64,000 nucleotides of DNA. It comes from Rebecca billardiae RCC1528. Taxonomy: Eukaryota; Protista; Haptophyta. Below, piece after piece: positions 58,216 to 63,800 of this stretch. Position numbers and translations under genes: made by a program. Under the pieces are notes generated by a model. That model was not told the origin of the DNA. It was given only the letters and a program-made list of their open reading frames with translations, and did not search any database. Every line of letters starts with the position of its first letter. Position 1 is the stretch's first letter. The stretch covers positions 1,302,001 to 1,366,000 of the forward strand of contig OZ251232.1 in NCBI GenBank assembly GCA_965240325.2, read 5' to 3'.

Positions 58216-58729
58216 CAGGCAATCGCGGGCAATAAGGAGCTGTCACGTTAAGAAACTGGGGCTTGCTATCTGCGGATCTGGCCTAGAAACTGAGGCTAGC
58301 GATTGGCTGGTTCGCTATACGCATAGTCACACTAAGAAACCGGGACTACGTCGTCCCGGCTGACGAGTGGTCCGCCGAGGGGCGAGGGCGGCGAGGCGCA
58401 GTCGGCCCGTCGGGGACGCGGCGCGCGGCCCGACTACGAGTACAGGCCAAGTCCCGACTTCTCCTGATGACTGACTCCTGGCCAGTGCACCGCAGCATCC
58501 ATGCAACATCATGCCAGATTTGCTCCAAAAAGGCCCAAAATTTTCGTCGGCCTCGCCGGCCGGGCCTAAAGACTCAGCGGGGGGCTCTGCCCCCCTGCGC
58601 CCCCCGCGCCTGCGCGGCGGGCGGACCTAGCTAAGAAGCTGAGACTCCGTAGGCGCTCGGGCTACCGAACGGCTAAGAAACCGAGGCTAGCCGTGAGATC
58701 TCTGACTTCTTATTGCCCGCGATTGCCTG
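58216..58729 (-). mobile_element. MITE copy 2 (514 bp), inverted relative to copy 1
   Basis: Same TIRs and TA flanks; differs from copy 1 by two 2-nt indels and one substitution. Confidence 0.9.
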
Positions 58730-59183
58730 TAGTCGTCGGATACTTTGTCAGACAGTTATATTATTGCTACGCCATACAGTACGCGGCCGATACTCATACC
58801 GGGCCGGCCTGTCACTGTCATCGGAGGCGGACCCCAACTCACCCCATACGCGACGCCTGACCGGAGTGACGGTTCACGGTAACGATATATATATATATAT
58901 AAATATATATAACGAACGAACTACGGGTCCGAACTAGACCTGGCACGGTTACGGATGAGAATTTACTTCGTCACAGTGAGCAGAGCTTTGGGAATCGGAA
59001 TTCGGGTCAGTCAGAGTCTCGCCACGCCGCCGCCGGCCGCGCCCACGGCGCCGGCCACCTCCGAAGACCGAATCCTCAGTGTGAGTCTGTGACCGAGTAC
59101 GCGGGCGGCAGCAGTCCGGTGCAACGCGAAGGATGCGCATGCCGCCGATTACCCCGCGGCGACGCAGGAAGAGTTGCCACGAC

Positions 59184-60420
59184 TCACGTCGCCCGGAAGT
59201 GCTCGTCGTCGATCGTCGCGAAGATGTGGCCCGAGTTGACGAGGCTGGCAATCCCCGCTTGCACGGCGTCGGCGCTCGGGGCACTCGTGTCCGGCCAGTG
59301 CGCGACAATCTGCGACTTGGACGTCCCGGCGACACCGTCGCCCTCGTCCTGAAAGCGGTTCACCACCTGGAGAACCTGTCCGTGCGGCGTGGCGGCAGAC
59401 AAGGCAGGGGCGCTCGGCCAATCAGCCAGGTTGGCGGTCAGCCGCGCAAGGTGCCGCCCAGTCTCAGCGCACATACATCACTGTGAGCGTGCGAGGGCAG
59501 CGGGCGCGGCGCGGGGCGAGGCGGGTGGTGGTGCAGCGGATCACCTTGCTCGCTGCCGCCACGACGACCGCGCCGCTCACGGGTGGCGCTCCGACCTCGG
59601 CTGCCTTGCGCTTCTCCCCCACGACGGGAGCGGCTGCAGGCGGCGGCGGCTGCGGCGGCTGCGGCTGCGGCTGCGGCTGCGGGACAGCGCCGGCCGGCGC
59701 AGCCCGCTGATCGGCCGCCGCGCTGCCGGCGGCGGCGGGTGGGCCGAGGACGGCGCCGCCCGCCGAGGGGGCAGACGCCGCGGCGGCCTCCGCCTTCGGC
59801 GCCTCGATGGTGACCACGCGTGTCTCCACGCCGGCGACGATCTCATACGGGCTCGACGTCGTGTTGTACTGGCGGTTCGCCTCCTTGATCCGGCCGTTCT
59901 CGACGTGCAGCAGCGCGCCCGCGAGGACGAGCGGCTCGAGGCGGGTGGCGTCGTCGTTGAACGCGACGACCTTCACCTGCGAGCCCTGCGCATCGTCCGA
60001 GAGCACGAAGGAGAAGACCTTGCCCGGGCCGCGCGCGCTGTTGAAGTCGCGCAGCTCCGCCTTCTGTGCGACGCGGGCGCGGACGGCCCAGCGGTTGATA
60101 TACGGATTGAGCGCCGAGATCTTCACGGGCTGGACGAGTGGGGCTGGGGCCGCGGCGCCCTTCGCGCCGCCGCCGAGGCCACGCGAGCCGAGCACGCGCT
60201 CCTGCGAGGCGCGGTCCAGCGAGCCCCAGCCAAAGTAGCTGCTCGGGTGGCCGCGCGTGTAGCAGCGCGCGTGGTGGTACTTGTCCACCATCTGCGTTCT
60301 GCTGCCGTGCCAGCCGCCACTCGCGTTGCGCACGGAGACCCTCACGTCGCCGCGGCTGATGGCCCCGCAGCACGTCTGGCACCGCGCGCGCCCGTTCGGC
60401 GAGACCTCGATCCCGGGCAT
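59184..60420 (-). CDS. PARP-type zinc finger + RPA1-like OB fold + RPA2-like C-terminal winged helix, ~355 aa
   Basis: Exons 60420-59545 and 59375-59184 (phase-0 GT-AG intron). EVSPNGRARCQTC..YHHARC; ISALNPYINRWAVRARV..GKVFSFVLSD..IKEANRQYN..YEI; IASLVNSGHIFATIDDEHFRAT. Confidence 0.85.
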
Positions 60421-60806
60421 GTTTGAAGCGGGCTCGTCCTGCCGCGGTGGTTCCTGAGCGACCAACCGCCGAGTCGGGACTCCGGTCGAGCTCGGGGAAA
60501 CCGGAACCTATCATACCAGTAATACGTGCTACTACGCCACTTACTCATACCTATCGCAATTCATCACCCGCATCAATTGCCGATTAATACGGTGCGGGTG
60601 CGGCGCGTGGGAAAATGGTCCGGTTGAGCAGTCCGGCTCGCTAAACTCGGCGGGTGATCAAAGTCGCGAGCTCGCCGCTCGCCCGGCCGCTGTGCCGCGC
60701 GAAAGGCGGTCAGGTAGCCGCAGCACGCGGCTTTGCCAGCGACCAGTGCGCGCGCCAGGCGCCGAACTCGGGAGCGCCTGCTAGAGCGCCGGCGGAGAGA
60801 GGGAGG

Positions 60807-63800
60807 ATGCGCTCTTCGAGCGCGGCCGCGCTTCGCGCAGCCGTGGCGGGCGCGCTGGTCGCGCTCGCCTCGGGCTTCACCGAGGTGGGGCACCCGGAGG
60901 AGTGCACGTGCCCCATGTTCAAGCCGCCCGCGTACACGGTCGACCCGGGATGGGCGACGCACACGTGCGTGCGCTCGGCCAAGTATGGCACGGCGATGTG
61001 CGCGCCGGTGGAGGGGGACCCCATGAACGGGCTGTACGCGGCGGACGCCGTGGCCCACCGCCAGGCCATCATGGCCGAGCCGCAGTTCGCGAGCCAGTTT
61101 GCCGCGGGCGCGACGCACCCGTCGGCGCTCGGCATCCCTCTGCAGGCGGCGCCGTGCGACCGCACGTCGCCGCCGCCGCACCCGGACCCGCCGCCGCCGC
61201 CGAGCCCGCCACCGCCGCTCCCGCCGGCCCCGCCGCCGCCCAGCCCGAGCCCGCTCCCGCCGCCGCCCTCGCCGCCGCCGCCCACGCCGTCGCGCCGCGG
61301 CGGCGCGCGGCGCGAGCTCTCGCCCGCCGAGATTGAGAAGGCTGAGGAGGCGTTCGTGGACGAGTGGCTGTCGGACGAGGCGGTCGAGCGCGCGCGCGCG
61401 TTCGCGCCGATGGACGGCGTCGCGCCCGCCCACCACGCCGACGCGGCGCACGCCGCCGCCGACGCCGCCGCGTACTTTGGCCGCATCGGCCGCGAGGCGG
61501 TCGCGGGCGCGCGCGCGGGCGCGCGCGAGGCGGACGCGTGGGAGTCTGACCTCGAGAAGGCGGCGTTCGAGGCGATCGAGAAGTACGGCGGCGGCGAGTC
61601 GGGCGACGCGTCGATCAACATCACGCGCGCGCTCCGCCTCCCCGACGGCACCGAGCCCAACGACCGCGTCCCCGACCCTTACTTCGAGGTGTCCATCCGT
61701 CACACGACCGGCGTGGACACGCTCTGCTTCCTTCACAACTATGTCGACAACGCGCACGTGGCCAAGGTGCACGTGAACGAGGAGTACCCGATCTTCCACC
61801 CGGACCTCGAGTACTTCTGCGACAAGACGTTCGCGCCGGGCGACACGATCGTCTTCAAGGTCTTCGACCACGACTTCACCAAGGACAAGAGCGACGACGA
61901 CCTGCTGATCGAGCTGTCCAACTGCCCTGCGATGGAGGGCAAGCACGAGCGCACGGGGCTGATCACGTGCTCGGCGCCGCGGCCGCACGGGAAGAACGGC
62001 GAGCAGACGGTGATCCAGTACAAGGTGGGCCACCACCCGCACCTCAAGTCGCCCTCGCCGCCGCCGCCCGCGCCCTCGCCGCCGCCGCCCTCGCCCTCGC
62101 CGCCGCCGCCGCCGGGCGGCAAGCAGTACGAGGGACCCGAGCTGTGCATCGGCAGCTACAAGCCGGACGAGCCGCCGCGCTTCGACGCGGCGCAGGTCGG
62201 CGTGGGGTTCAACTTCACGTGCGCGCTCACGACCAAGGAGGCGCGCGTCAAGTGCTTCGGCGCCAACCCCTTCGGCCAGCTCGGCGGCGGCCACGCCGAC
62301 GAGTGGGCGGCGATCGGCGACCACTTTGTCGACCTCGGGACGGTGCACGTGGGCGAGCACTTCCACATGGGCGACGCGGCGCACCCGAACCACATCGCGC
62401 CGGGCTTCCACATCCCGCTCAAGGTGCAGATGGTCACGGCGGGCCACTCGCACGCGTGCGCCCTCACCTGCGGCGGCCTCGTCAAGTGCTGGTGCGCGCC
62501 TCGCGCGCGCGCGCGCGCCGCGCGCCGCGCGCGCAGCTTGGCCGCGCCGCGCCGCGCCGCGCCGCGCCGCGCCGCGCGCGCGCCGCGCGCTCACCCGCCC
62601 GCCCGCCCGCCGTGCCCTCGCCGACCGCGCGGCGCGGCCACCGCGCGTGCGCAGGGGCTCGAACGCGCTCGGCCAGCTCGGGTACGGCGACACGATCAAC
62701 CGCGGCTTCTTCCCCTCGGACATGGGCAACAACCTGCCGTACATCCAGCTGGGCCACGAGAAGGGGCGCCACCCGCCAATGGGCGAGCACCACCGGCACG
62801 CGGCGATCAAGCAGATCGTGGCGGGCGGCGGCTCGTGCTCGCCGCACGAGTTCCCGATCGAGCCGCAGGGCCGCACGTGCGCCGTCGACACGGCCAACGA
62901 GCTGCGCTGCTGGGGCGACAACACGTGCGGCTACCTGCCGCACTCGAAGGACTCGGGCCACTGCATGCAGCACGGCCGCGCGCACGACGCGATCGCCGCG
63001 GGCGGGCACCACCCGTGCGCGGCGATCGGCGACGAGAGCTTCGAGATGGGCAACCACCTGCCGGTAATCAGCCTGCACCACGACACCAAGTTCACCTACG
63101 CCGTCTCCGTCGGCGTCACCTTTGCGTGCGCCATCTCGGCGCCCGACGAGTCTCCGGACGCGCAGTGGTCGCCGCAGGAGAACGCCGAGAAGGGCGGCGG
63201 CAAGCTCAAGTGCTGGGGCGACAACTCGTTCGGCCAGCTGGGGCAGGGGAACCACGAGTCGGTGAAGTACCGCCTCGACGCGCCGCCGGGCGACCCCGAC
63301 TTCGTGCCGTGGGTCGACCTCCCCGGCCCCGCGCTGCAGGTCTCTGCCGGGTTTGCGCACGCGTGCGCCGCGGTGCAGCCGCGCGGCTCGGGCGAGGTCA
63401 AGCTCTACTGCTGGGGCGAGAACGGCGCGGGGCAGCTGTACCTCGCGCCCGACCCGACGTCCGACCTCACGTTCGTCGGCGACGACCCCGACGAGATGGG
63501 CGCGGGCATGAAGGCCGTGCCCGTCGCCGTGCGCACGCTGCGCGAGCCGGAGGACTCGGCGATGGGCCGCGAGGCGTCGTACGACGCGCCGTTCATCATC
63601 GCGGGCAAGAAGAACCCGTCCTACTGCCCGGACCTGGGCTCGGCGACGTGCGTGATGGGGCCGGACGACGTGGTCGACGCGAAGTGCGTGGGCGCGCACC
63701 ACGCGATGGACACGCTGCAGATCCCCTCCGTGATGGGCAGCGCCGTCCACCTGCGCAAGATCAGCGGCGAGGGCGGTGAGACCAAGTGCGTCTCTGCCGA

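Follow-up and report, generated by a model that had tools for sequence, protein, structure and literature searches.

A two-exon gene on the minus strand of the haptophyte Rebecca billardiae RCC1528 (contig OZ251232.1, window positions 60420-59184) encodes a protein of ~355 amino acids (292 + 63 codons after intron removal), in which a PARP-type zinc finger, an OB fold of the RPA70 DBD-A type and an RPA32C-like winged helix are predicted to follow one another on a single chain. The window is the whole stretch of DNA that was analysed, 64,000 nucleotides in length. The DNA-binding and partner-recruiting functions of RPA are normally split across subunits, and break sensing normally runs via PARP or ligase III. 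Apparently, the gene represents a new arrangement of three known domains that is seemingly confined to the Pavlova lineage.

Gene structure and domain content

The minus-strand open reading frame (ORF) begins with an ATG at 60420, and the frame of exon 1 is closed by a stop at 59466-59464. Exon 2 lies in a frame shifted by one base, which is open from 59477 (a stop in this frame sits just upstream of that position) and ends ...GHIFATIDDEHFRAT before the stop at 59186-59184. Because the two exons are in different frames, only splicing can join them. A candidate donor, AAG/GTGATC, has its GT at 59544-59543, and a candidate acceptor, GGACAG/GTT, has its AG at 59377-59376. The first-pass annotation, made from the DNA letters alone, had placed an intron between exactly these sites, and the sequence features of such an intron (Table 1) are indeed found there.

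The codon bias follows the switch of frame. The GC content at codon positions 1, 2 and 3 is 0.73, 0.58 and 0.92 in exon 1 and 0.67, 0.46 and 0.89 in exon 2, and is flat by codon position in the predicted intron (0.68, 0.71 and 0.77). In a sliding 20-codon profile, the frame with high GC at third codon positions (GC3) passes from that of exon 1 to that of exon 2 between ~59540 and ~59400. Note that the exon-1 frame keeps a GC3 of 0.90 over the first 60 nt beyond the proposed donor, and that alternative in-frame GT donors are present at 59580 and 59481 and an alternative AG acceptor at 59367. The junction may accordingly lie a few linker residues away from the place proposed, with the domain content unaffected.

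The start was fixed at 60420 because three relatives of the finger (described below) likewise begin with MP.IE at their N-terminus or first plausible methionine. The stop lies within a few residues of where RPA32 itself terminates. The reading that the gene is part of a larger one was considered and rejected, since homology fixes both start and stop. We conclude that the locus is a real nuclear gene from a Pavlovales haptophyte, made of two exons with a predicted junction. Database searches were run exon by exon and not on the joined protein. An exact-product look-up of the unspliced 318-residue ORF returned no match.

The N-terminal domain is a divergent but genuine PARP-type finger that falls short of the strict Pfam threshold and is predicted to bind zinc and to recognise nicks, gaps or ends. 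It matched the Pfam family PF00645 (zf-PARP) with an E-value of 3.1e-6 (28.3 bits); its relatives P0117, P0151 and P0143 score 27.6-31.6 bits on the same family. A single-sequence search of the PDB returned PARP1 chains at E 7e-4. With a profile of the four finger sequences (profile A3, comprising the query, P0117, P0143 and P0151), the match to PARP1 reached E 8.5e-12 for the Zn1+Zn2 chain and E 1.2e-5 for Zn1 alone, with 78 of 84 positions aligned (profile 3-80). The zinc ligands C14-x2-C17 and H50-x2-C53 are invariant in all four members of the subfamily, and so are R11 and W37. In the profile A3 alignment, R11 falls on PARP1 R18 and W37 on PARP1 F44, the residues with which PARP1 Zn1 contacts DNA through a backbone grip (R18) and a base-stacking loop (F44) (PMC8150716). 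PARP1 D45 is not conserved; this residue is needed only to activate the PARP catalytic domain (PMC8150716).

Fingers of this type bind the exposed duplex end at nicks, gaps and breaks regardless of sequence (PMC8150716; PMC3094755), and they serve as targeting modules on the non-PARP enzymes LIG3 (PMC4333375) and plant ZDP (PMC10573277). The Rebecca finger shares with PARP1 Zn1 and Zn2, LIG3-alpha and ZDP the CX2C...HX2C arrangement, the grip arginine, the stacking aromatic and a G[FW]..L...Q helix. On the other hand, the protein has one finger only and lacks a catalytic domain after it, and the inter-ligand loop is ~4 residues longer than in Zn1. As in ZDP and LIG3, the finger stands on a non-PARP effector, probably as a sensor of nicks or gaps (PMC10573277; PMC4333375).

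The finger is followed by an OB fold that, by its sequence matches, is of the RPA70 DBD-A type. A phmmer search of the PDB matched human RPA70 DBD-A (1jmc) at E 1.2e-16. Full-length human RPA70 was matched at E 4.7e-16, with residues 99-206 of the query lying on residues 185-290 and a single two-residue gap. Matches at E 1e-15 to 1e-16 comprised human DBD-A (1jmc, 1fgu, 8rk2), Ustilago RPA70 and yeast Rfa1 DBD-A, and neither RPA32, STN1 nor any other OB family appeared in the same search up to E 10. The close likeness to RPA70 DBD-A that had been proposed from the DNA sequence is thus upheld. The domain scored 27.0 bits on Pfam PF01336, exactly the cut-off. In the full-length alignment F154 falls on human position 238 and Y185 on 269; human F238 and F269 are the base-stacking aromatics of DBD-A. 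A protein-language-model feature search with finger and OB fold gave only weak OB leads, with scores of at most 0.79.

The linker behind the OB fold contains one basic patch (GEKRKAAE), has a GC content of 0.76-0.79 and matched no Pfam family. Its predicted local distance difference test score (pLDDT) is mostly below 50 in a single-sequence AlphaFold model.

Exon 2 encodes an RPA32C-like tail domain with a predicted winged-helix fold. It matched Pfam PF08784 (RPA_C) at E 4.7e-4 (21.3 bits), starting from residue 3 of the exon and covering only positions 55-106 of the 106 in the model, its winged-helix half. The six best PDB matches were all C-terminal chains of RPA32 (E 8e-4 to 2e-3), with the next match above E 1, in agreement with the C-terminal RPA32 likeness read in the first-pass annotation. 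The alignment with RPA32C reaches the C-terminus of both proteins, and the wing motif GHIFATIDDEHF is near-identical to that of human RPA32C. Protein-language-model neighbours of exon 2 were clusters of RPA_C and of MCM winged-helix domains, with scores of 0.93-0.95; the Atlas RPA_C cluster (score 0.94) shares 201 features with exon 2. The domain is acidic (net charge -5), as is the partner-binding surface of RPA32C (PMC9407234). RPA32C is a winged helix on a long flexible linker, and it binds basic helical motifs of XPA, UNG2, RAD52, SMARCAL1 and TIPIN (PMC9407234).

Compared with the RPA heterotrimer, the protein retains an alignment over the whole length of DBD-A, both stacking aromatics and an RPA32C tail on a long linker. 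It differs in that both RPA parts stand on one chain instead of two subunits and that a PARP-type finger is added. Moreover, it has a single OB fold and is without DBD-F, B, C, D and E, the zinc ribbon of DBD-C and the N-terminal phosphorylation region of RPA32. Two canonical assignments were rejected on these features. Against RPA1 stand the single OB fold, the lack of a match to REPA_OB_2 or Rep_fac-A_C, and the length of ~355 residues as opposed to ~600-660. Against RPA2 stand the DBD-A-like OB fold, which gave no RPA32 match, and the zinc finger at the N-terminus.

Relatives of the protein

HMMER with residues 1-210 against 1.84 billion protein cluster representatives returned 1752 matches. 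Nearly all of those inspected were RPA70s, matched via DBD-A, and the inspected ones among the 453 library proteins that matched at E <=1e-10 were RPA70s or RPA70 fragments. Among the best 150 of the 1752 matches, the finger pattern was present only in P0117 and P0143, and the wing motif in none. A protein with finger and OB fold would rank at the top of this list, and the best 150 held no full-length relative. Word-index protein searches with exon 1, either whole or as residues 1-210, found nothing, and a word-index search with the four-sequence profile found only its own input sequences and P0151. Among JGI metagenome contigs, a scan turned up canonical RPA70 genes (L002, L003) and nothing else. 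A scan of viral contigs found nothing, and thus no sign of an origin from a giant virus. The architecture, which the first-pass annotation had not recognised, is accordingly uncatalogued in the protein, metagenome and viral collections searched. The searchable literature held no paper combining terms for it.

The nearest parallel in the literature is BRCA2, for which a putative zf-PARP-like DNA-binding region at the N-terminus together with C-terminal OB folds that bind single-stranded DNA (ssDNA) has been reported (PMC5027613). BRCA2 is huge and unrelated to the Rebecca protein, with OB folds unlike that of RPA70-A and without an RPA32C domain; the likeness is one of logic only.

The sole match spanning the boundary between finger and OB fold was P0002 (KAJ1617747.1), a 145-residue 'hypothetical protein' of Pavlovales sp. 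CCMP2436. Its 47% identity to the query covers the finger tail, GWGSLD...Q..VL in P0002, and the OB fold that comes next. Its gene (L001:5935-6860, MU631998.1) sits at the extreme end of a contig of 53 kb, and the part encoding the OB fold is interrupted by at least two introns, at sites that are intron-free in the Rebecca gene. In view of this different intron structure, the pair is not the product of a recent copy. A quick maximum-likelihood tree built from DBD-A domains placed the query next to P0002 as its sister, with a Shimodaira-Hasegawa-like approximate likelihood ratio test (SH-aLRT) value of only 85 and with long branches for both (0.87 for the query and 1.59 for P0002, versus a median of 0.42). 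By these sequence comparisons, another Pavlovales species likewise combines two of the parts, the finger (by its tail) and the OB fold. The last four residues of KAJ1617747.1 appear to read through a likely third donor, GAG/GTGCTT, just before the end of the contig.

The finger relatives P0117, P0143 and P0151 are 44-51% identical to the query finger. P0117 and P0151 are the closest (48-51% identity) and have the same MP.IE start. Behind a finger of the same subfamily, both have SAP and HIRAN domains where the Rebecca protein has its OB fold and winged helix. SAP and HIRAN read DNA and 3' ends. The two are uncharacterised metagenome proteins of 293-326 residues, P0151 being encoded at L005:176-1156 and at L006:133-1113. 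In Pfam searches they matched the finger at E 1e-6 to 1e-7, SAP at E 1e-6 to 1e-7 and a partial HIRAN at E 4e-4 to 6e-3. No paper describing the combination of finger, SAP and HIRAN was found in the literature. P0143 (L004:696-989), on a metagenome scaffold of lower GC content, has the same finger from MPAIEV on, followed by a likely donor CAG/GTATAT. Its contig ends 42 nt past the called stop, and its 204-residue product probably includes ~120 spurious upstream residues.

The top HMMER match, P0001, is a sequence of 4022 residues with 26 tandem RPA-type OB domains (REPA_OB_2, 26 stretches, 1464 bits). It could be a genuine giant protein with many OB folds, or else a repeat that was mis-assembled.

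Proposed function and its alternatives

With moderate confidence, we propose that the protein is a single-chain adaptor for gaps and breaks which works alongside canonical RPA and which arose through domain shuffling within the Pavlova lineage. The DNA-binding and recruitment steps of this model we infer. The finger would cap the duplex end at a nick, a gap edge or a junction of single- and double-stranded (ss/ds) DNA by means of its arginine grip and tryptophan stacking loop, and the OB fold would hold the adjoining few nucleotides of ssDNA via F154 and Y185. Two weak binders placed ~20 residues apart may in this manner acquire an avidity specific for junctions or gaps, with gap edges, resected ends and primer-template junctions as candidate target sites. 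The winged helix, acidic and flexibly tethered, would then recruit factors with basic RPA32C-binding helices, of the class of UNG2, XPA, RAD52, SMARCAL1 and TIPIN. That fingers of the same subfamily are fused elsewhere to SAP and HIRAN fits a portable break-targeting head, as in ZDP (PMC10573277).

If the adaptor model is correct, these modules would prove to be portable, sufficient in minimal form and recombinable by evolution. The protein would offer a ~38 kDa model for how weak DNA readers jointly recognise gaps or junctions, and for RPA32C recruitment uncoupled from the heterotrimer. A small protein of this kind might also find use in probing ss/ds junctions. The finding is limited in reach by an apparent restriction to one little-studied algal order, and the arrangement is known from one gene model and one truncated orthologue.

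Several observations weigh against this reading. Splicing is predicted from the codon-bias frame switch and the canonical sites only. A public Logan contig (ERR14847148_40016; L007) corresponds to window positions 58709-59668 at 100% identity and is colinear including the intron; it looks like genomic DNA, with no bearing on splicing. The complete three-domain architecture was seen in one genome only. The gene of P0002 is truncated by the end of its contig, with the 3' part missing, and its zinc-binding half was not found within 6 kb upstream by tblastn, by the Cys/His pattern or by a six-frame profile search. The three-domain reading of the first-pass annotation was borne out by hidden Markov models in that all three domains were matched, but the zf-PARP score is under the gathering cut-off of 39.3 bits and that of RPA_C just under its cut-off of 22.6 bits. 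Single-sequence AlphaFold gave a poor model of exon 1 (pLDDT 40) and a mediocre one of exon 2 (pLDDT 68) with atypical secondary structure, and Foldseek with the latter found no match in the PDB at E <=0.001. Finally, a lone DBD-A binds a few nucleotides of ssDNA only weakly.

As a whole, the interpretation given in the first-pass annotation is partly supported; 'monomeric' and 'break-targeted adaptor' are properties that we infer. OB fold, linker and winged helix follow one another in RPA2 and STN1 as well, so that the protein may conceivably act within a complex as one of its subunits and not as a monomer.

A bolder version of the proposal, which we put forward tentatively, is that the protein acts as a self-sufficient 'mini-RPA'. 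Finger and DBD-A would jointly read gap edges or ss/ds junctions, and the winged helix would tap the network of RPA32C partners, with motifs of the UNG, XPA, RAD52, SMARCAL1 and TIPIN type, without the heterotrimer and without poly(ADP-ribose) signalling. If this were true, the protein would open a third route, not seen before, by which break sensing leads to the recruitment of repair factors. It might then belong to a wider algal toolkit in which the finger is combined with interchangeable readers of DNA ends, either OB fold and winged helix or SAP and HIRAN.

It appears unlikely that the protein is a subunit, an RPA2/STN1-like paralogue with an acquired finger that joins RPA1-like and RPA3-like partners in an alternative complex of the RPA or CST type, acting for instance at telomeres or forks. 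The succession of OB fold, flexible linker and C-terminal winged helix is the order found in RPA32, the match to RPA_C ends at the C-terminus as it does there, and alternative RPA complexes are known from other eukaryotes. However, the OB fold differs in type from DBD-D and from that of STN1: it matches only RPA70 DBD-A, a domain that has no part in RPA trimerisation, with RPA32 DBD-D, STN1 and other OB folds absent even at E 10. The extra N-terminal finger also sets the protein apart from them. Furthermore, no amphipathic helix of the kind found in the trimer core is evident after the OB fold, which is directly followed by the Ala/Pro-rich linker.

We likewise give a low probability to a product consisting of finger and OB fold only. 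In that case the intron would be kept and translation would end at the stop at 59466-59464, leaving the winged helix untranslated or encoded as a separate microprotein of 96 residues from an ATG at 59474. The prediction of splicing from sequence only is compatible with such a product. So is the exon-1 frame, which remains open for 26 codons past the donor and keeps its high GC3 over the stretch noted above. An ATG-started ORF of 96 residues does exist and was called on the Logan contig. However, the first 33 codons of this ORF are without coding bias (GC3 0.68 across the intron), and the winged-helix homology begins exactly at the acceptor, with exon 2 residue 3 corresponding to ORF residue 33. 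A separate promoter would have to fit into the ~90 nt between the stop at 59464 and the acceptor, which is improbable, and canonical GT..AG sites are present in phase.

There is little to favour the idea that the protein is a decoy or regulator, competing with RPA32C for its partners or with PARP and ligase fingers for breaks and so damping recruitment. The same domains would serve this purpose, the near-identical wing motif could titrate RPA32C ligands, and CSB and SMARCAL1 are reported competitors for RPA32 (PMC11109976). The DNA-contact residues of both DNA-binding modules are nevertheless kept, which speaks for a protein that acts on DNA and against titration in solution.

Least probable of all is a young, lineage-specific chimera that is functionless or decaying: the restriction of the full architecture to one genome, the long OB branches and the apparent lack of the zinc-binding half in the P0002 orthologue would fit it, but the frames are intact with very strong codon bias, all zinc ligands and DNA-contact residues are conserved, and a second Pavlovales species has kept the gene, with another intron structure.

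Feature coordinates and flanking sequence

Table 1. Positions of the features of the Rebecca billardiae gene and its upstream region within the window
Feature	Position	Strand	Details and basis
Intergenic region, 386 bp, shared with divergent plus-strand gene	60421..60806	.	Presumed bidirectional promoter and 5' untranslated region
Exon 1	59545..60420	-	292 codons; covers the finger, the OB fold and the low-complexity linker
PARP-type zinc finger, aa 5-80	60181..60408	-	Match to Pfam PF00645 and of the profile to PARP1
RPA70 DBD-A-type OB fold, aa 98-206	59803..60129	-	PDB phmmer match
Ala/Pro/Gln-rich low-complexity linker, aa 207-292	59545..59802	-	Translation, ~85 residues
Predicted intron	59376..59544	-	169 nt, GT..AG, phase 0; joins 292 and 63 codons
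Exon 2, coding part	59187..59375	-	63 codons, RPA32C-like winged helix, wing motif GHIFATIDDEHF at end
Stop codon TGA	59184..59186	-	Sequence

The GC content of the upstream gap is 0.65, compared with more than 0.72 in the flanking coding DNA, and GC3 in the frame of the gene climbs only from ~60440. The divergent neighbour on the plus strand opens with an ATG at 60807 and has a signal-peptide-like start, MRSSSAAALRAAVAG. This gene (60807-63779) encodes proline-rich runs of the PPPSPPPP type and RCC1-like GQLG motifs.

The 100% match of the Logan contig indicates that the same or a very close strain has been publicly sequenced. On that contig, a gene caller split the locus into an ORF of 67 residues and one of 96 residues. 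The 3' flank after the stop codon is GC-poorer (0.61), and an imperfect TA-rich microsatellite lies at 58886-58925, ~260 nt 3' of the stop codon.

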